This document shows positions 1 to 10,249 of a stretch of DNA of 64,000 nucleotides, one piece after another (within the stretch, counting starts at the first letter, position 1; each line of letters begins with the position of its first letter). Where the stretch lies: positions 3,794,705 to 3,858,704 of the forward strand of contig OZ199838.1 in assembly GCA_964304625.1 (NCBI GenBank). Reading direction: 5' to 3'. Origin of the DNA: Kudoa neothunni (lineage: Eukaryota; Animalia; Cnidaria). The notes beneath the pieces were generated by a model, which did not search any database, had not been told where the DNA came from, and worked only from the letters and a program-made list of their open reading frames with translations. Made by a program: the position numbers and the translations under genes.

Positions 1-2966
1 AGAATTTGAATTTAAACTCGAGCTGGGTTTTAAAATGGAAGAAATTAAATTGTCGCAAGTGGCATCAGTTAAAGTAGGGTTCGAAGACGAAGCACCTACA
101 TTTAAATTGTTATTTAAATTTAGATCGTTATTTAAATTAGAGTTTAAAGTTGAAGGGGAACTTGGAGTTGGCGCAATAATAGTGTCAATTTCGGGTGGAA
201 TGTCATTTAAAATTTGCTTAATTTTCTTAACAATAGGTGTAATTTGAGAATTAGGAATAGAAATAGGCTCACTTTGGTCATTGATAACAATGACTTCAGG
301 AGCATTTAAATTTGAATTTAAATTTGAATTATTAACAGTATTAGACTGAGGGGAAGCAGCCACTCCTATAGGGTTGGATAAAACAGAGGCAATATTCGCT
401 GCAGATGCAGAACACCATACAGGAGTAGCTTGAGTTATTTCCCTATAGCAGCGCTTACGATTACAATTATATAAACCTCTCAGACGTTTAGCTAGTGCTT
501 TTCGATCTTGCGCGGGAGTTCTGGGAATATTAACTAGTGGTTTAATTTTAGAAGTATTAGAATTTGAATTATTAAGATTTTTAGATTTATTAGAATCAGC
601 GTCACACTTAAAAGGGGTGAAAAACAACCCCAATTCTTGTGCTCGCTGGGAACAAATTTCCATTAACTTGGCATAAAGCACAGTGACATCTCCAATAGTA
701 CGACTATTGAAAACATCACAAAGCTGCAAAGATGTAGCTTTAAGCAGTTCCTCCTGTTCTGCTTTGCGCTGACGGTAGTCTTTCTTAACATTAACTATTG
801 CGCTATCTATAGCATTATCATTAACGTTAAGTTCGGCGTTAAGTGCGGCGTTATTGGTGGAGGGAGATTCCAGAACATTCGCATCGTTACCAGCATTACT
901 TCCAACAACGATAACGTCACCGTTATCGTCATCTTCAGCAACACCGCCATCATTCGAAGCTCCTGGAAGATTAATTTCTAAACTATCAGAACTAATATTA
1001 GGATTATTAGCTGCTGCAGTCATTGCCTCATTTAAAAATTTACTAAGGCCAAACGAAACAATAGATTCGTCTGGTTCAATTAAAGCTTCTTTAATTTCAC
1101 CTAAAAAAGTCACTGAGTCGTCGAGATTGCTCTCGGTTTCCTTAGCGAATTTAACATTAGAATTCATTAAAAGCGAATCTAGTTTTTTCTTAAAAGAGGC
1201 ACCAGTGGGTTGCGCGTACTCCCGTTTAGTTGGAATATTAATGCTAATCGAAGAGTCCATAACTGCTCTTGGACGCTTAGATCGCGGAAAATAAAGGTCT
1301 CCTGCATTAGCAGGAGGTTTAATATTGTTAAAATTAATATTAGGATTAAGGCGCGGGTTAGTTAAATCATTATTTAACAGTAAAGAATTAAAATCGCTGT
1401 CTGTAAAATATAAATAATCAAAAATCTCTGTCCTTTCGGAGAGAGTTTTTGAACTTAATGTGGAAGAGTTATTGATGAGGAAGTTTTGTAAATTAGTTAA
1501 GTAAAAAGGGTCACTATTAATACTAGCAGTAGGAATACTACTATTTAATGAATAAATGTTAAAATTGGACTTGGGCGGCGGGGAACCAGCCTCATTTAAT
1601 TCATTAAGTGACTTCATTAAGTTGGATTTAATGTTAAAATTAGGTTGATTAAAACTAGAATCAACCATCGTTTGTTCCAGTAAAACAACATCAGATTGGT
1701 TATCCAAAGGGGGAATAATTCCAGCTTTAGTTAACTCGTCAGACGCCGTATTCAAATTTAAGTTTAAGTTTAAGTTTGAATTAGAATTAAAATCATGATT
1801 AAGATTAGTAAAAGGTAAATTAGAATTGGAATTAGTAAAGTTAAGTGATGTTAAATCAACAGCCAAGTCAGTGTGATCCATAGTACTATTTAACGTTAAC
1901 ACACAGTTGTCAACTTCCAACATAGCTTCACTCACAACTTCCACGTTAGGGGAAGCCGATTGCTCATCTACATCTTCAGTCACAACAAAATCATCATCAT
2001 TAACATTAAAAAGATCACCCATCATCGATTGCCGTTGCGACTTAGTCGCCAAGACATCAATAACAGGGACATTAACACTAACATTACGTAAAGTTACATC
2101 GTGAGGTTGCTGAGTACTACTAACTAAAGTTACGTTATCATTAATGATATTAATGACATCATCAGCACAAACAGCTCCAACACTCGCAACAACAACAACA
2201 TCAGCAGATTCAGATTCACCAGAACCATCATTATCAACTGACTTTGCTGTGATGGAGGTTGTACCTGATTGCACATCAGTGTCAGCACTAGAGCCTAAAA
2301 ACTTTTCATTAGCGATTAAAACATCATTATATTGATTAAGTTTAGCAGAATTGTTGTTAAAATTGTTGAAATATATGGTCAAATCTGCCGTTATTTCAAC
2401 GGCGCCATCGGCCAAAATTAACTCATCAGGAAAAGTCCCGTGAGTGTACTCATCACGAACAAGGTTGCAGAACTTGTTCAGTGATGTGTTTAAAATTGTT
2501 TTATTGCGACGAATCGCAGTTAAAATGCGCTTTCTTTCTTTGGACGATTTCTCGTCCAAAGTCGCAAATGCGGCGGCGCAGTTAGAAGATGGCTCGTTTT
2601 CGAGGGCAATCAACTCAGTTTGTAATTTAAGGATTCGCTCGCTAACACGGTGGTAGTCTGCTGCACCCAAACACAAAGCAGGAAGCTTCTTGCCTCGGCC
2701 ACGGCCCTTTAAATAGGCTTGAAAATAAACGTGCAATGCTCGTCTATTCTCGTCGCCCATGCTTTAAGTTAAAATGGACAAAATTCCGCGATAAATCGCT
2801 CAATTTTAATACTTAAAGCAACCCCACTAAAAAGCTATGTGGATCGTTAGATGCGCAAAAAAGAGCTCTATCAAACGATACCAACAAGTTTTTAATAAAA
2901 AAATTACTTGGGGGAGAAAAACCCAAAACAACTGATCCCGACGCGACTTGAACGCGCAACCGCCCG
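1..2966 (-). mobile_element. Second tandem copy of the same retrotransposon (5' part; truncated by window edge)
   Basis: 1-2966 matches 5718-8683 with no difference noticed. ATG at 2760; the ORF runs off the left edge of the window. Confidence 0.95.
2933..2966 (-). pseudogene. tRNA-Trp 3' half (nt 40-73) at the junction between tandem copies
   Basis: Same as 8650-8683. Upstream on the minus strand lies the element 3' end (..ATAATTA) instead of the tRNA 5' half (..CCAGAT). Confidence 0.93.
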
Positions 2967-3083
2967 TAATTATACAATATGGTATCTACGAGATAAACTA
3001 AAAATTTTATACTAATGATAGAGTTATGTCAAATTTCAGGCGTCGGAACTCATCGGGTATCATCGGTTAGAGGGGACAATTCT

Positions 3084-6000
3084 TCACGCCGTCCCCGGAC
3101 GGGGGACAGCGGGTTGGGATTTTGACAAAGAAGCCATTTGAATATTTGTAGTGGGCGGTTTGGGATTTGGTTGGCTTCTTGCTTGAGTGGTGGTGGATGG
3201 AGCCGGACCAGCATTTAAATTTAGACGTGGGGGGTTTCTCTTACGGACATGGTTGTACCATACCGCTCGAGAGCCCTCCAAAATGGAAAGAGTTATCCTC
3301 TTGCTGAGCCTCTTCTGCTTATGCATCGAGATCCCAACAAGAAGATAACCCTCGCGGTTAAGTGAGTGGTGTGACCCAAGAGAACCGTAAACCAAAGCGC
3401 TGCAACTAACTTTGTAGCCTAGATTCTCAAGAGCCGCCTTCTCGGGTAAATATTTGGCTATTTTAGTTATTCTAGCCTGGTCAAGTCGGCGGGAATTAGC
3501 TTCGTAACTTACAGTTACATCCACTATCTTCACCTCCTTCTTGACGCGATTAAAAATAACTATATCTGGTCGGCGGGTGGAAGAAATAACTGGGATTCTC
3601 TGGTCGTAGAGAACTTCCCAGGACTTACCTTCGGGTTTGATCATTTTAATGAGCTCCTCCATAACATTGTTATGGCGCAACTGTATGAGGGACTGCCCAT
3701 GAGGACACGAATTAAGGACATGGCCCAAAGATTCAATGTCACACGGACAGTGTCTACATTTTGCGTCAGGAACTGACTTGGCACGTTTTAAAGCGTATCT
3801 GGTGGGAAGAGTATTAGCACGACCCATGACAGCGAACCTATAAACAGGGGTAGATACGTTACCAGTTCGCAGCCATGAATTGGCCTCCTTCAACCCAGAA
3901 AAACACTCCACAGATCTCCCCTGATCAGGAAGCGCTTTCCAGTTACGCAGGAATATTAATTGATTATGCCATCGAAGCCTGCGAATTCGAGTGGCGGTTA
4001 CTTTATATCGTTCTGGAACAAACGATGGATCATTAAGTGTAGACAAGTCCAAATCCACACTCATATGATCTTCCTCATCACGCAGGTTAAATTTTATACC
4101 AGCAGATTTGCGATTAAGGCGTAGAGAAGAGAGCAGACTTCTTACATCCCTAATACGGCCAATCTCCTGGTCAAGATTAAGGTAGTCGACAGCGTTTAAT
4201 GTGGAATTGGTTCTTCGACTGATGATTTCATCTAGTGACTCACGAGCTATATTCTTGATCCTATCGTCTCCAGAATGAAGAACGTTAAGACCAGAAGCTA
4301 GTCGAAGAGCCACATAGTCCTTGTGAAGGTTTCGAAGGCCCAATCCACCAAGATTAACGGGGGTGAATAGTTGCGCTTTAGTATGACAATTAGGGAGTTG
4401 CAACCACTGACGAACATGCTTGACGACAAGCCTGTCCGTCCTTTTTAAATCCTCAATTTTTAAACAGTTATTTTTGAGGGTAAAGTCTAGAGTTGGATAA
4501 AGATAAACTCGCAACAACTCTAGCTTCATAAATGGCAGCAACAGCGCATTTGATAATTTAATAAAATTAGCCTCAAACTCTTTAATAGCAGGCAAAGGAT
4601 CTTTAAATGAATTCAGATCTTTACAAGTACCTAAATACTTATAAAAATCTTCCATCATCGGGATCGGTTGTTGCTGAAGAGTGAGGGGAATTAAGGAAGG
4701 GTCGTTGACTACACGTCTGCCGTTTTTCTTAAAAACACTTAAGGAAGCGCATTTGTTAATATTAACTGAAAGAGAATTTTCAGAACAAAAATCCTCAAAT
4801 TTAGTTAATAAAGAACTAATCTCGGTTCTTTCATTGGCCAAAATCACAATGTCATCTGCATAACAGAGGGCACCGATCTTTTGACCACGCAAACTATAAC
4901 CTAGATTAGAAACGTCAACCTTCTTAAGGTATTTATCTATAATTAGATTAAAAAGAAGTGGAGACATGGGACAACCTTGTCTCACACCTCTACCATTCGG
5001 CAGAACTCTCGCGGTAGCACCAGTGCTATCGCGGGCAAGGGAAAAGCATTTTTCATACAAATTAGAGATAAAATTGATGACATTGATATTGACGTTACGC
5101 TCTCTAAGTTCGTTTAAAACTAAATGGTGGGGAACAGAATCAAAAGCTTTACGAATGTCCACCCAGACAGCCGAAAGCTTTTTGCTACCCCGGCGAGTAT
5201 CATCAAGAATTTCTTGAAGAGTGAATGCATGCTCAACACATCCATCACCTTCTTGAAATCCTTTCTGAGAAGGGGAAAGTTTAATTAGTTTGGCCAACTT
5301 GCGGTTAACCACAGACATAAAAACTCTATAGAGCGTCTGAGTGACACTAATAGGTCGATAGTCAAGTGGGTCATTAGAATTTGGAGTGGGAGATTTGGGA
5401 AGAAGCACCAAACGGGATTCTAGCCAATCCTCCGGAATCTTACCTTGTTCTAGAATTAAATTAAACAGAGGCGTCATAATAAACTCCGCAAAAGGAAGTC
5501 TCTTCCAGAACAACATCTGGATACCATCGGTACCGGGAGATGTGTCCCTCTTGGCCCTTTCGAGCGCAAGAGCCACCTCTTCTTCTTTAATAATAAAAGA
5601 AGGTGTGAACTCATCATCATTAACTGATTCTGAGGACACGTTAAGATTGGGAATTTGATTTAAATTTAAATTATCATTTAAACTGGAATTAACTCTAGTT
5701 ACGTCCTTATTTAAATTAGAATTTGAATTTAAACTCGAGCTGGGTTTTAAAATGGAAGAAATTAAATTGTCGCAAGTGGCATCAGTTAAAGTAGGGTTCG
5801 AAGACGAAGCACCTACATTTAAATTGTTATTTAAATTTAGATCGTTATTTAAATTAGAGTTTAAAGTTGAAGGGGAACTTGGAGTTGGCGCAATAATAGT
5901 GTCAATTTCGGGTGGAATGTCATTTAAAATTTGCTTAATTTTCTTAACAATAGGTGTAATTTGAGAATTAGGAATAGAAATAGGCTCACTTTGGTCATTG

Positions 6001-8477
6001 ATAACAATGACTTCAGGAGCATTTAAATTTGAATTTAAATTTGAATTATTAACAGTATTAGACTGAGGGGAAGCAGCCACTCCTATAGGGTTGGATAAAA
6101 CAGAGGCAATATTCGCTGCAGATGCAGAACACCATACAGGAGTAGCTTGAGTTATTTCCCTATAGCAGCGCTTACGATTACAATTATATAAACCTCTCAG
6201 ACGTTTAGCTAGTGCTTTTCGATCTTGCGCGGGAGTTCTGGGAATATTAACTAGTGGTTTAATTTTAGAAGTATTAGAATTTGAATTATTAAGATTTTTA
6301 GATTTATTAGAATCAGCGTCACACTTAAAAGGGGTGAAAAACAACCCCAATTCTTGTGCTCGCTGGGAACAAATTTCCATTAACTTGGCATAAAGCACAG
6401 TGACATCTCCAATAGTACGACTATTGAAAACATCACAAAGCTGCAAAGATGTAGCTTTAAGCAGTTCCTCCTGTTCTGCTTTGCGCTGACGGTAGTCTTT
6501 CTTAACATTAACTATTGCGCTATCTATAGCATTATCATTAACGTTAAGTTCGGCGTTAAGTGCGGCGTTATTGGTGGAGGGAGATTCCAGAACATTCGCA
6601 TCGTTACCAGCATTACTTCCAACAACGATAACGTCACCGTTATCGTCATCTTCAGCAACACCGCCATCATTCGAAGCTCCTGGAAGATTAATTTCTAAAC
6701 TATCAGAACTAATATTAGGATTATTAGCTGCTGCAGTCATTGCCTCATTTAAAAATTTACTAAGGCCAAACGAAACAATAGATTCGTCTGGTTCAATTAA
6801 AGCTTCTTTAATTTCACCTAAAAAAGTCACTGAGTCGTCGAGATTGCTCTCGGTTTCCTTAGCGAATTTAACATTAGAATTCATTAAAAGCGAATCTAGT
6901 TTTTTCTTAAAAGAGGCACCAGTGGGTTGCGCGTACTCCCGTTTAGTTGGAATATTAATGCTAATCGAAGAGTCCATAACTGCTCTTGGACGCTTAGATC
7001 GCGGAAAATAAAGGTCTCCTGCATTAGCAGGAGGTTTAATATTGTTAAAATTAATATTAGGATTAAGGCGCGGGTTAGTTAAATCATTATTTAACAGTAA
7101 AGAATTAAAATCGCTGTCTGTAAAATATAAATAATCAAAAATCTCTGTCCTTTCGGAGAGAGTTTTTGAACTTAATGTGGAAGAGTTATTGATGAGGAAG
7201 TTTTGTAAATTAGTTAAGTAAAAAGGGTCACTATTAATACTAGCAGTAGGAATACTACTATTTAATGAATAAATGTTAAAATTGGACTTGGGCGGCGGGG
7301 AACCAGCCTCATTTAATTCATTAAGTGACTTCATTAAGTTGGATTTAATGTTAAAATTAGGTTGATTAAAACTAGAATCAACCATCGTTTGTTCCAGTAA
7401 AACAACATCAGATTGGTTATCCAAAGGGGGAATAATTCCAGCTTTAGTTAACTCGTCAGACGCCGTATTCAAATTTAAGTTTAAGTTTAAGTTTGAATTA
7501 GAATTAAAATCATGATTAAGATTAGTAAAAGGTAAATTAGAATTGGAATTAGTAAAGTTAAGTGATGTTAAATCAACAGCCAAGTCAGTGTGATCCATAG
7601 TACTATTTAACGTTAACACACAGTTGTCAACTTCCAACATAGCTTCACTCACAACTTCCACGTTAGGGGAAGCCGATTGCTCATCTACATCTTCAGTCAC
7701 AACAAAATCATCATCATTAACATTAAAAAGATCACCCATCATCGATTGCCGTTGCGACTTAGTCGCCAAGACATCAATAACAGGGACATTAACACTAACA
7801 TTACGTAAAGTTACATCGTGAGGTTGCTGAGTACTACTAACTAAAGTTACGTTATCATTAATGATATTAATGACATCATCAGCACAAACAGCTCCAACAC
7901 TCGCAACAACAACAACATCAGCAGATTCAGATTCACCAGAACCATCATTATCAACTGACTTTGCTGTGATGGAGGTTGTACCTGATTGCACATCAGTGTC
8001 AGCACTAGAGCCTAAAAACTTTTCATTAGCGATTAAAACATCATTATATTGATTAAGTTTAGCAGAATTGTTGTTAAAATTGTTGAAATATATGGTCAAA
8101 TCTGCCGTTATTTCAACGGCGCCATCGGCCAAAATTAACTCATCAGGAAAAGTCCCGTGAGTGTACTCATCACGAACAAGGTTGCAGAACTTGTTCAGTG
8201 ATGTGTTTAAAATTGTTTTATTGCGACGAATCGCAGTTAAAATGCGCTTTCTTTCTTTGGACGATTTCTCGTCCAAAGTCGCAAATGCGGCGGCGCAGTT
8301 AGAAGATGGCTCGTTTTCGAGGGCAATCAACTCAGTTTGTAATTTAAGGATTCGCTCGCTAACACGGTGGTAGTCTGCTGCACCCAAACACAAAGCAGGA
8401 AGCTTCTTGCCTCGGCCACGGCCCTTTAAATAGGCTTGAAAATAAACGTGCAATGCTCGTCTATTCTCGTCGCCCAT
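3084..8477 (-). CDS. Retrotransposon polyprotein: long Asn-rich N-terminus, reverse transcriptase, CCHC zinc knuckle, restriction-like (PD..D) endonuclease
   Basis: RT motifs SPGTDGI, YRPISV, QKGF, VDIRKAFDSV, GVRQGCPMSPLLFN, YADD (4851-4862), KYLG, GGLG. Then NTLPT, CRHC-x8-H-x4-C, RHN, RRPDIVI, IVDVTV, KIAKY, GSLG: the RT-CCHC-RLE architecture of R2/NeSL/Utopia-type elements. ORF uninterrupted. Confidence 0.96.
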   Translation of the reverse strand: MGDENRRALHVYFQAYLKGRGRGKKLPALCLGAADYHRVSERILKLQTELIALENEPSSNCAAAFATLDEKSSKERKRILTAIRRNKTILNTSLNKFCNLVRDEYTHGTFPDELILADGAVEITADLTIYFNNFNNNSAKLNQYNDVLIANEKFLGSSADTDVQSGTTSITAKSVDNDGSGESESADVVVVASVGAVCADDVINIINDNVTLVSSTQQPHDVTLRNVSVNVPVIDVLATKSQRQSMMGDLFNVNDDDFVVTEDVDEQSASPNVEVVSEAMLEVDNCVLTLNSTMDHTDLAVDLTSLNFTNSNSNLPFTNLNHDFNSNSNLNLNLNLNTASDELTKAGIIPPLDNQSDVVLLEQTMVDSSFNQPNFNIKSNLMKSLNELNEAGSPPPKSNFNIYSLNSSIPTASINSDPFYLTNLQNFLINNSSTLSSKTLSERTEIFDYLYFTDSDFNSLLLNNDLTNPRLNPNINFNNIKPPANAGDLYFPRSKRPRAVMDSSISINIPTKREYAQPTGASFKKKLDSLLMNSNVKFAKETESNLDDSVTFLGEIKEALIEPDESIVSFGLSKFLNEAMTAAANNPNISSDSLEINLPGASNDGGVAEDDDNGDVIVVGSNAGNDANVLESPSTNNAALNAELNVNDNAIDSAIVNVKKDYRQRKAEQEELLKATSLQLCDVFNSRTIGDVTVLYAKLMEICSQRAQELGLFFTPFKCDADSNKSKNLNNSNSNTSKIKPLVNIPRTPAQDRKALAKRLRGLYNCNRKRCYREITQATPVWCSASAANIASVLSNPIGVAASPQSNTVNNSNLNSNLNAPEVIVINDQSEPISIPNSQITPIVKKIKQILNDIPPEIDTIIAPTPSSPSTLNSNLNNDLNLNNNLNVGASSSNPTLTDATCDNLISSILKPSSSLNSNSNLNKDVTRVNSSLNDNLNLNQIPNLNVSSESVNDDEFTPSFIIKEEEVALALERAKRDTSPGTDGIQMLFWKRLPFAEFIMTPLFNLILEQGKIPEDWLESRLVLLPKSPTPNSNDPLDYRPISVTQTLYRVFMSVVNRKLAKLIKLSPSQKGFQEGDGCVEHAFTLQEILDDTRRGSKKLSAVWVDIRKAFDSVPHHLVLNELRERNVNINVINFISNLYEKCFSLARDSTGATARVLPNGRGVRQGCPMSPLLFNLIIDKYLKKVDVSNLGYSLRGQKIGALCYADDIVILANERTEISSLLTKFEDFCSENSLSVNINKCASLSVFKKNGRRVVNDPSLIPLTLQQQPIPMMEDFYKYLGTCKDLNSFKDPLPAIKEFEANFIKLSNALLLPFMKLELLRVYLYPTLDFTLKNNCLKIEDLKRTDRLVVKHVRQWLQLPNCHTKAQLFTPVNLGGLGLRNLHKDYVALRLASGLNVLHSGDDRIKNIARESLDEIISRRTNSTLNAVDYLNLDQEIGRIRDVRSLLSSLRLNRKSAGIKFNLRDEEDHMSVDLDLSTLNDPSFVPERYKVTATRIRRLRWHNQLIFLRNWKALPDQGRSVECFSGLKEANSWLRTGNVSTPVYRFAVMGRANTLPTRYALKRAKSVPDAKCRHCPCDIESLGHVLNSCPHGQSLIQLRHNNVMEELIKMIKPEGKSWEVLYDQRIPVISSTRRPDIVIFNRVKKEVKIVDVTVSYEANSRRLDQARITKIAKYLPEKAALENLGYKVSCSALVYGSLGSHHSLNREGYLLVGISMHKQKRLSKRITLSILEGSRAVWYNHVRKRNPPRLNLNAGPAPSTTTQARSQPNPKPPTTNIQMASLSKSQPAVPRPGTA

Positions 8478-8612
8478 GCTTTAAGTTAAAATGGACAAAA
8501 TTCCGCGATAAATCGCTCAATTTTAATACTTAAAGCAACCCCACTAAAAAGCTATGTGGATCGTTAGATGCGCAAAAAAGAGCTCTATCAAACGATACCA
8601 ACAAGTTTTTAA

Positions 8613-8645
8613 TAAAAAAATTACTTGGGGGAGAAAAACCCAAAA
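8613..8645 (-). terminator. Oligo-T Pol III terminators downstream of tRNA-Trp, inside the repeated unit (also at ~2896-2928)
   Basis: Minus strand after discriminator A73: GTTG TTTT GGG TTTTT CTCCCCCAAGTAA TTTTTTT. Confidence 0.75.
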
Positions 8646-8649
8646 CAAC

Positions 8650-8722
8650 TGATCCCGACGCGACTTGAACGCGCAACCGCCCGATCTGGAGTCGGACGCT
8701 CTGCCAATTGAGCTACGGAACC
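8650..8722 (-). tRNA. trnW: tRNA-Trp(CCA), intact 73 nt, no intron
   Basis: GGTTCCG TA GCTC AATTGGCA GAGC G TCCGA CTCCAGA TCGGG CGGTT GCGCG TTCAAGT CGCGT CGGGATC A folds into a full cloverleaf with anticodon CCA. A and B boxes are present. Confidence 0.95.
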
Positions 8723-10249
8723 TTTCGACTTCTAGGAGAGGATTTCTCTTCTCTTTATATATGTTATAACGTGAAAATTTTATTACACACAAAAAATTAT
8801 TTTTGTTTACATTATTTTCTATTTGTATATAATTTCCGAGTCGGTCTCTATTATAATGTCTTACAATTTTTCGAATCCTAAAAATAATTTTATCGATTTT
8901 AATGCACCTAGAATATAATTATTTTTATTTGGACACATGGATTTTATGAATATAACAATTTCCTATTACGTGTCAGTATATTTACTTATTGTTACATATC
9001 ATTTTTTAACTGAATTTTGAGCCATATTATACATATAATACTTACAATAATAAATAAAAATATAGATTTATTGTATGTTTAATTAAATTCATACATGCGT
9101 GCATACATGCATGCATGCTCAATAAACATTGATTTCATTTCAAAATTAATTTTTAATATGTAAATGTTAATCAATTAGATATCGCCAGGTTAATACAATT
9201 TCTTCTTTTTAACCTTTGAATTTTAATTTAAAATTTATTCTATATATATATATCAAATAAATTTTATTATTATTATTTAATAATGTCTTTTCTAATTGAT
9301 ATTTAATTATTAGTCTTTGAAACTTCAATGTTTCTAGATGATGAATTAAATGTGTTGTGGACCATATCCATCCATCACCATTGATGGTTAAAGCATTAAT
9401 AAAACAAATAAAATTTATATATGAATCAACATTATTGATTTCCCTTTCAAATAAATTATATTGAATCCAATACGAGATTTATAAGTAAAATAATTTTTAC
9501 AGATAAATTCAATGTTGATAAAATTTGTTAACTTAAAATATAAACTGGTGATTACGTGAAAAATAATTGTTACTTCAATTTATATTAATCGAATAATACA
9601 TTTAAAAAATTATCCTATAAATTAAACTATCGCAAACTTAGCATTTTTATAGTTCGAGTAATTTATCATATTAAATATCAGAAAAATATTTTTAGACTAT
9701 AAATGTAGAAACATTAATTTAAAAAAGTATAATAGCGGTCCAAATTATTATTTATATTCAATGTAATCAAGTTTAAAAATAAGCTACATTCATTAACAAT
9801 TTTATTTAAAATAAATAATAAATTACTTGTACAGGGCAAACTTACATAAATTCTGAAAATATTGCTTCAAAGTTGTCCCATCGACCTATGATTGTAGCTG
9901 TTATAAATCTGATAATCAATCGCACGTAACGTAACTGATTGATTACCATACTATCAGATTATGATAACATTGATACTTTAGCTCTGTATCAATAGATTTT
10001 ATTGCATAGGCACTAATTTATTAGAATACAAAATAACGTGAATTTTGGTGTTTTAAATAAGGCATGTCAGTCAGTTCTTCTGTTTGAGAGTGCATATTGG
10101 TATCAGTGAAAATGTTCTAAAAAATAAATATTAGTCTAAAATGTCAGTAAAAAATCTTATTACTTTATTTTATTTATTCTAAGGTTTATTGTATTATTAA
10201 AAGTTGAGTGGGGCACCAACCATAATGTTTGGGACAGGTGTCAAACAAA

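Follow-up and report, generated by a model that had tools for sequence, protein, structure and literature searches.

A 64,000-nucleotide stretch of Kudoa neothunni contig OZ199838.1 (G000:C1:3794705-3858704, hereafter the window) contains a retrotransposon without long terminal repeats (LTRs), of the non-LTR type, that lies directly behind nucleotide (nt) 39 of a tRNA-Trp gene and begins with nt 40-73 of the same tRNA. The best explanation, which we regard as quite likely, is that this is a site-specific element of the R2 group that inserts into the genome's single tRNA-Trp(CCA) gene, carries nt 40-73 and rebuilds the gene with each insertion. The evidence comes from the anatomy of the locus, the fidelity of the insertion site, a pattern found family-wide and the linkage of the tRNA 3' half to the unit that follows it.

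ARAGORN and Rfam agreed on one tRNA in the 64-kb window, tRNA-Trp(CCA) at 8650-8722 on the minus strand (Rfam score 58.6 bits, cut-off 29). In minus-strand order, nt 1-39 of this tRNA were followed by 5,717-bp units arranged head-to-tail, each composed of tRNA nt 40-73, T-run terminators, a leader, an open reading frame (ORF) of 1,797 amino acids (aa) and a 117-nt 3' untranslated region (UTR). The parts of the locus are as follows:

8754-8761, minus strand: TATA-like box TATATAAA, 32-39 nt upstream of tRNA nt 1; part of the host gene, present at the head copy only.
8684-8722, minus strand: tRNA-Trp(CCA) nt 1-39, comprising the acceptor 5' strand, the D arm and the anticodon stem-loop to U39; the sole host-side part of the gene.
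8650-8683, minus strand: tRNA-Trp nt 40-73, comprising the anticodon-stem 3' strand, the variable loop, the T arm with the B box and the acceptor 3' strand; the first 34 nt of unit A.
8630-8649, minus strand: trailer with T4 and T5 runs (Pol III terminator-like), present in every unit.
8478-8629, minus strand: 5' leader of unit A.
3084-8477, minus strand: single intact ORF, 1,797 aa, stop codon included.
2967-3083, minus strand: 3' UTR of unit A, 117 nt; the final 31 nt (2967-2997) are the same between copies and the differences fall in the remainder.
2933-2966, minus strand: second tRNA nt 40-73, with no 5' half ahead of it; the 5' end of unit B.
1-2932, minus strand: what remains of unit B, namely its trailer, its leader and the ORF's 5' part, with 100% identity to unit A; it exits the window and reaches a 200-N gap.

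The trailer GTTGTTTTGGGTTTTT (T4 and T5 runs, 8645-8634) stands directly 3' of tRNA-Trp nt 73, and a leader of about 170 nt separates the tRNA from an ORF that opens with an ATG at 8477 and stops at 3084-3086. The 3' UTR of unit A terminates in GTATAATTA / ...ATTGTATAATTA at 2967 and adjoins C40 of unit B at 2966. From 2966 on, nt 40-73 (to 2933), the T-runs, the leader and the ORF start all recur; positions 1-2966 of the window equal 5718-8683 at 100% identity, which gives a period of 5717. An earlier note, made from the letters of the window, had read the order as tRNA nt 1-39, nt 40-73, T-runs, ORF, 3' UTR and next unit, and this order is exact to the base. Its abutment of the element's 3' end to C40 at 2967/2966 was confirmed in the minus-strand reading, and the perfect 73-nt tRNA that it saw at the 5' junction is the complete tRNA-Trp called by both programs, with a terminator present. 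The 34 nt contributed by unit A would complete a functional-looking tRNA-Trp gene.

The genome comprises three chromosome-sized contigs of 17.2, 12.0 and 11.0 Mb and an 18.2-kb contig with COX1. The 39-nt tRNA-Trp 5' half occurred once in these 40.26 Mb with up to 3 mismatches allowed, and the 34-nt 3' half exactly three times, always within the Trp array; the arrangement at the junctions is therefore not a product of chance. A loose pattern search of the genome for a CCA anticodon arm plus T loop returned the tRNA-Trp gene and one non-tRNA-like match, the latter unverified, and no other Trp-like tRNA gene was detected by the mismatch or pattern searches. In a protein search of the genome, copies at least 99% identical to the element were found in the Trp array only, the next best matches reaching at most 51%. 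Stray copies at unrelated sites lacking tRNA sequence, and 3' junctions not fixed at one position, were two of the three observations that the earlier note had named as contrary to its proposal. The protein search found no such copies, all close copies lying in the tRNA-Trp locus, and both of the readable Trp junctions (2/2) place the 3' end at tRNA nt 39/40. The target is the genome's single detectable tRNA-Trp gene; this single-copy aspect and the breadth of the family described below go beyond what had been proposed.

The array continues past the left edge of the window, where a 200-N assembly gap lies directly inside it (L016:9801-10000 = G000:C1:3794505-3794704). Past the gap are the 3' 2,864 bp of a copy that matches unit A at 98.5% identity; next comes a further tRNA 3' half, together with its leader and the opening ~132 codons of the ORF (97.7% identity). 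This last unit then turns into a decayed old relative, with ORF aa 388-516 recognisable at 43% identity and the reverse transcriptase (RT) gone. The Trp array has at least three units of differing age plus a remnant. Its last unit is chimeric: its opening ~574 nt hardly differ from the young units, and the sequence then switches abruptly to a strongly diverged older copy, in which ORFs of 150 and 206 aa persist (L016:4175-4795 (-) and 6275-6727 (-)). This structure suggests recombination or conversion inside the Trp array. Similar 200-N gaps were present in the Gln, Lys and Phe array regions, and the arrays are probably longer than assembled.

Matches of 51% identity or less formed 20 element clusters in the genome. 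In 17 of the 20, a tRNA listed by Rfam lay 2-5 kb upstream on the same strand, and ARAGORN supplied the tRNA of an 18th (Met), the Rfam list used for the comparison being incomplete; the chance expectation of a head tRNA is ~0.004 per locus. At least 18 of 20 clusters are tRNA-headed, the head-tRNA check having covered all but those at C2:1.82 Mb and C2:7.76-7.78 Mb. The head tRNAs include Gln, Lys, Phe, Asn and Met, among others. Six further arrays were read (Gln-TTG, Lys-TTT, Phe-GAA, Gln-CTG, Asn-GTT and Met-CAT), and each of them (6/6) is headed by a complete tRNA. In five of the six, units are joined as 3' UTR end, tRNA nt 36-40 to 73 and T-run trailer; the Met array gives no clean junction, because its second 3' piece agrees with the tRNA only across the final 20 nt. 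The UTR-end motif ATTGTAT(A/T)ATTA is common to the Trp, Phe and Asn elements, and one Lys subfamily has a shorter related UTR end, ATTGTATTGT. Open ORFs of 1,750-2,240 aa were found in several arrays, and, like the tRNA-Trp 5' half, those of tRNA-Phe and tRNA-Gln(TTG) occur once in the genome. The Trp element is one lineage of a larger tRNA-associated family. A TATA-like motif was present at about -30 to -40 in 7/7 head tRNA genes (the window, L023, L030, L033, L035, L036 and L038) and missing from the internal 3' halves, which suggests that tRNA genes in this organism rely on a promoter element lying upstream.

Variation within these sister arrays bears on whether the tRNA 3' half is carried by the element or duplicated from the target. 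Eight units of at least five lineages are stacked in the Gln-TTG array; their flanks are 50-80% identical, and the 38-nt tRNA piece differs by 0-2 nt. Two of the units have variant acceptor strands (CAACC and CGACC versus CGGCC), and all of these pair with GGTTG. The variant halves accompany their own trailer type, and one UTR type precedes normal and variant halves alike. In the Lys array, two trailer variants track the type of the unit to their right. On a foreign contig (L021), two divergent adjacent units, with 46% identity in the N-terminal protein and 65% in the leader, are joined by a 33-nt tRNA 3' part that is identical at 33/33 positions. Since variant halves and trailers are linked to the following unit, a unit consists of 3' half, trailer, leader, ORF and UTR. 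The earlier note had not chosen between a carried and a duplicated half, and the sister arrays favour the former, as the variants go with the unit that follows. The tRNA 3' half is under constraint. The orphan half behind the intact Phe element is identical to the tRNA at 36/36 positions, while the old element that it heads has decayed; this fits a carried half, and is expected if the orphan had been the working 3' half until the newer insertion. The tRNA-Phe locus was also considered as a clean single insertion, and this was rejected: its second 3' half is followed by the 5' region of a decayed older element.

A target-site duplication (TSD) alone would place the bottom nick at nt 39/40 and the top nick past the tRNA end or terminator, so that the half is duplicated from the target and absent from the RNA. 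We consider this unlikely, although duplications of related kinds exist: LIN15_SM of planaria has its 3' junction near tRNA nt 26 and its 5' junction near nt 66, an overlap of ~40 bp, and TSDs of 20 bp are known from reptile Utopia families. Trailers of different subfamilies in the Lys and Asn arrays and on L021 are, moreover, alike over their first 10-20 nt. A TSD predicts that the left and right 3' halves plus trailers of an element are equal, whereas the Gln-TTG and Lys arrays show two alternating classes that track the right-hand unit, and the duplication would need to end at nt 73 even where trailers differ from nt 74 on. A pure TSD is thus disfavoured by left and right copies that are unequal and by the presence of more than one class per array. 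Insertion downstream of an untouched tRNA, after nt 73, with the half at the 3' end of the element and the tRNA never split, seems to us very improbable. A tandem array alone cannot place the 34 nt at either end of the unit, and a 3'-terminal target copy could anneal to the nicked target. However, the Gln-TTG variant halves are correlated with the following trailer and not with the preceding unit (UTR type), which disfavours a half at the unit's 3' end, and primer pairing with the 3' half would need a nick at nt 39/40, as in the model preferred here. As judged from the sister arrays, it is most likely that the element carries the tRNA 3' half and that its insertion rebuilds the gene.

Several points weigh against a carried half and a rebuilt gene. 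Variation in the Trp array is too little to separate a carried from a duplicated half, and the distinction rests on the sister arrays. Neither an empty site nor a clean single insertion with its original trailer was seen in the arrays read, and the tails of the Trp and Phe arrays are decayed older copies. The copy number of the Trp array is uncertain because of the 200-N gap. LIN15_SM appears to duplicate ~40 bp of its target inside tRNA-Arg (PMC4640811), so staggered cleavage could contribute to the duplicated half. Finally, the 5' and 3' ends of the element RNA are deduced from DNA only, and an RNA start exactly at nt 40 is left unexplained by the model.

In the mechanism that we propose, the endonuclease would nick the bottom strand between tRNA nt 39 and 40, and the freed 3'-OH would prime reverse transcription at the conserved 3' UTR end (target-primed reverse transcription, TPRT). 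The cDNA would extend to the RNA 5' end, which would bear a new nt 40-73 and terminator. Joining would then fuse the host nt 1-39 and TATA-like box to the element-borne nt 40-73 to give a complete gene with B box and terminator, and the earlier 3' half would be displaced downstream as an orphan. A rebuilt target could be hit again, so that elements would pile up head-to-tail behind the gene; as the gene is single-copy and essential, only insertions with a full 5' end and a matching tRNA piece would survive. No 5'-truncated copies were seen in the arrays, only internal deletions with both ends kept, which fits with this mechanism because an insertion failing to deliver the 3' half would be lethal. 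We infer the nick position, the RNA ends and the precision of the 5' junction from the arrangement of the DNA. For the exactness of the 5' junction we favour annealing of the cDNA end to the target strand with the same 34 nt, that is, staggered cuts combined with a carried homology arm; alternatively, the RNA could be terminally redundant, with the half at both ends. As a tentative and somewhat doubtful extension, the carried 3' half might itself determine target choice, pairing with the nicked target or overhang and thereby setting both the landing site and the exact 5' junction. If this were true, a lineage would retarget by acquiring a different 34-38-nt tRNA piece. This would explain the radiation of a protein family devoid of zinc fingers and Myb onto at least 18 tRNA genes, as well as the common nt 36-40 junction and the element-supplied 3' halves, B boxes and terminators of the host.

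The protein encoded by the ORF supports placement in the R2 group. Pfam detected RVT_1 (E 1.1e-33) as the only domain family, and no PF03372 (APE) match was found in the ORF by the same search. The last 848 aa match solved R2 proteins across the RT and a C-terminal CCHC/PD-D/ExK endonuclease (9nl3 and 9dou at E ~1e-80; R2Bm 8gh6 at 1e-51). A second HMMER domain aligned query 561-780 to the restriction-like endonuclease (RLE) region of 9nl3, with its CRHC, PD, VDVTV and K motifs. The following features were recognised in the ORF:

8073-8477, minus strand: helical domain at the N terminus, aa 1-135, without a zinc finger; members of the tRNA-associated family are 20-42% identical in it.
6153-6203, minus strand: conserved pre-RT motif RLRGLYNCNRKRCYREI; 13 invariant columns in 9 family members.
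4737-5369, minus strand: RT core, RVT_1, aa 1037-1247; YADD at 4851-4862, aa 1206-1209.
3696-3758, minus strand: CCHC zinc knuckle (CRHC...H....C) ahead of the endonuclease.
3447-3575, minus strand: RLE motifs RRPDIV, IVDVTVSYE and the K in ITKIAKY, from alignment to the 9nl3 RLE domain.

With a YADD-containing RT, a C-terminal CCHC plus PD-D/ExK endonuclease, a single ORF and no LTRs, the element is an RLE-type (R2-group) non-LTR retrotransposon. This agrees with the RLE-type assignment of the earlier note, which RVT_1 with its YADD and the C-terminal motifs aligned to R2 structures bear out. The first ~950 aa gave no Pfam match even at permissive thresholds, and aa 1-140 and 640-960 gave none even at E up to 5. 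The AlphaFold model of the N-terminal domain was a helical hairpin (pLDDT 78), for which Foldseek returned nothing below E 0.5 from the PDB. The zinc-finger/Myb N-terminal domain expected of the R2 group was not detected by Pfam or by a C2H2 pattern scan; this pattern was absent from the N-terminal ~950 aa of 11 family ORFs and matched only C-terminally, in two Lys ORFs. The pre-RT motif, RRLRGLYRxNxKRCxREI in its family form, resembles an N-terminal extension of the RT. Asn/Leu/Ser-rich low-complexity sequence (NLNSNLN...) fills the ORF between the conserved domains (window 5600-8060 (-)). These stretches were not alignable between lineages and make up most of the size excess over R2 (about 1,100 aa).

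Comparison of unit A with the older Trp copy revealed 21 synonymous versus 1 nonsynonymous differences in the ORF part. The UTR differed at 18 of 117 positions, none of them in the last 31 nt. The pattern indicates purifying selection on the protein and on the UTR 3' end rather than neutral decay of a DNA duplication, and the Trp copies come from active lineages. This bears on the proposal of a single ancient insertion amplified by tandem DNA duplication or unequal crossing-over, with no ongoing retrotransposition. To its credit, there is 100% identity between units A and B, the tail unit has the look of a recombinant of a recent and an old copy, and blocks of identical units recur in the Gln array. 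We nevertheless give this proposal very little credence. Besides the excess of synonymous differences, several 50-80%-diverged lineages are stacked behind one gene, at least 18 tRNA loci each have their own lineage, a lineage with a Gln-like 3' half is present on another organism's contig, and ORFs are intact. An assembly artefact, in which a collapsed or mis-joined repeat would make the apparent junctions, can be set aside almost entirely. Although the array is broken by the 200-N gap just outside the left edge of the window, both junction types are gap-free and are seen again in six other arrays and in an independent metagenome contig, and four older runs of one sample, possibly the assembly's own source, contain 81-95% of the stretch's words.

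Two further candidates were considered. A giant tRNA intron, removed by the splicing endonuclease, is unlikely, since the junctions lie at 35/36 to 39/40, whereas 37/38 is canonical, and a normal tRNA is already complete with the first 3' half. Mimicry of a tRNA by the 3' UTR was rejected: local alignments of the 5' half to the UTR were no better than shuffles, and minimum-free-energy folds had no consistent acceptor-like pairing.

Relatives outside this genome fall into two sets. The closest database proteins, two from one ENA assembly, are 51% identical to the element and group with the genome's Gln-TTG lineage in a tree of the RT-RLE region. The 33-nt tRNA piece of L021 appears by eye to resemble the genome's tRNA-Gln genes. 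In the same tree, 11 tRNA-associated sequences are split from two octocoral sequences by a long branch (100/100), the tree being midpoint-rooted and monophyly thereby not established. The nearest named relatives are the octocoral proteins P0003/P0004 (Dendronephthya, Paramuricea) and P0006, with 25-27% identity over RT-RLE, and these sit in U2 small nuclear RNA (snRNA) genes. In L048 the order is U2 nt 1-29, element, and U2 from ~nt 39. The octocoral and metagenomic relatives lie in U2/U1 clusters (L046:9685-11373; L047:3564-5191; L048:1040-1110, 5124-5310), and in L048 the U2 5' end is present in three partial copies, in tandem, ahead of the element. P0004, P0005 and P0006 carry N-terminal C2H2 motifs and form a Utopia-like set, the locus of P0005 being unchecked.

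Some observations concern the leaders and joints of related units. Leaders of the Gln lineage contain a canonical mini-intron of ~36 nt (GTAAGT...CTAAC...TTTTTAG) just before the ATG, which is kept between the genome (L023:8540-8590, in its own Gln-TTG leader) and the foreign contig (L021:118-155, 5153-5190). If it is truly spliced, its retention implies an unspliced RNA template. At L022:3540-3600, also on a foreign contig, units are joined without 3' UTR or tRNA piece, and the mini-intron's 3' part, with the next ATG behind it, comes ~40 nt past the stop codon; this junction reads as a deletion or recombinant. In one Lys subfamily (L030:8700-8826 (-), Lys-TTT head) the frame is open from an ATG in the T arm (CCATGGGTTCGAGCCCC) through the trailer into the ORF, and that subfamily has no further in-frame ATG ahead of the conserved N-terminal domain. 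This may be a small hint that the tRNA half is transcribed, one that is weakened by the ability of R2-type proteins to start without AUG.

Several known systems resemble the Trp element in part. Utopia elements share the same RT-CCHC-RLE core and are its nearest named relatives by sequence, but they split U2 and leave the gene disrupted, disrupted U2 copies outnumbering intact ones in published genomes. They also have N-terminal C2H2 motifs, of which the tRNA family has none in the first ~950 aa, and Rfam found no U2, the Utopia target, in the window. R2 elements provide the best solved-structure matches (E 1e-80 to 1e-51) and share the single ORF, TPRT-type anatomy, strict site and occasional tandems. 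They differ in a 28S ribosomal DNA (rDNA) target, whose unit is inactivated, and in N-terminal zinc fingers and Myb, neither detectable in the Trp element. R2 RNA can carry upstream target sequence, which does not substitute for the downstream part, and the flanks of the Trp element are tRNA-Trp and not rDNA, the site of R2 proper.

Among NeSL-related elements, tRNA-specific families are known for tRNA-Pro (NeSL-1_TV), tRNA-Arg (LIN15_SM) and tRNA-Glu (LIN25_SM) (Kojima & Jurka 2015, PMC4640811), in line with the statement in the earlier note that a few families target tRNAs and none is known to target tRNA-Trp. They share with the Trp element an RLE-encoding single ORF, a fixed 3' junction inside the tRNA, the tRNA orientation and an AT-rich 3' end. 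In a supplementary figure of that study, the 3' junctions lie around tRNA nt 26, and the single 5' junction drawn falls short of the tRNA end (PMC4640811). Compared by published description, the NeSL-like families have multicopy targets, a 3' junction near nt 26 (Arg) and a gene left incomplete, in contrast to the single-copy target, the nt 36-40 junction of the family and the complete gene with terminator seen here.

Prokaryotic islands, phages and integrative and conjugative elements that carry attP offer a functional analogy only: a tRNA 3' part is carried, the gene stays intact and an orphan 3' part is left at the far end. They use a tyrosine or serine recombinase and a reversible DNA intermediate, whereas the Trp element has RT and RLE and, we infer, an RNA intermediate; no recombinase domain was found in the Pfam scan, in which RVT_1 was the sole family. 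Dada DNA transposons likewise include lineages each specific to one small-RNA gene, some inserting near the anticodon loop, but they are DDE transposons with 6-7-bp TSDs and disrupt one of hundreds of gene copies. A full-text literature search found no tRNA-regenerating retrotransposon, its coverage being incomplete and the result absence of evidence only. The third contrary observation named in the earlier note, an already described family with this target and structure, did not turn up in these sources either. The element belongs to a known kind, site-specific RLE non-LTR elements of which some target tRNAs, while the apparent rebuilding of a single-copy essential gene is not described in the literature searched.

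Apart from the element, the window also encodes HLH and RING proteins, and a search with a RING protein gave distant matches only. The mitochondrial COX1 of the assembly (L045, G000:C4:1216-5445) is extremely divergent, with 70-74% identity to the best contigs and ~45% to all other sequences; its 8 in-frame TGA codons must read Trp, and AGR stands for Arg in conserved motifs (code-4-like). Taken with the cnidarian affinity of the nearest named RT relatives, these features hint at a non-bilaterian animal that evolves fast, perhaps a parasitic cnidarian, though this is no more than a guess.

The usual view is that site-specific retrotransposons survive by hiding in multicopy genes, in which the loss of one copy does little harm. 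The family described here occupies single-copy essential tRNA genes and would deliver a replacement half-gene with promoter box and terminator, an RNA-mediated, eukaryotic counterpart of the attP trick of bacterial islands. This would account for the survival of such elements in a compact genome that has a single gene for each tRNA, and by this view full-length insertions with the right match should be strongly selected. The host's tRNA genes would then be retrotransposon-derived in part. Should the carried half also guide targeting, the family would be a natural retargetable, self-repairing system for site-specific insertion, of relevance to R2-based gene insertion.

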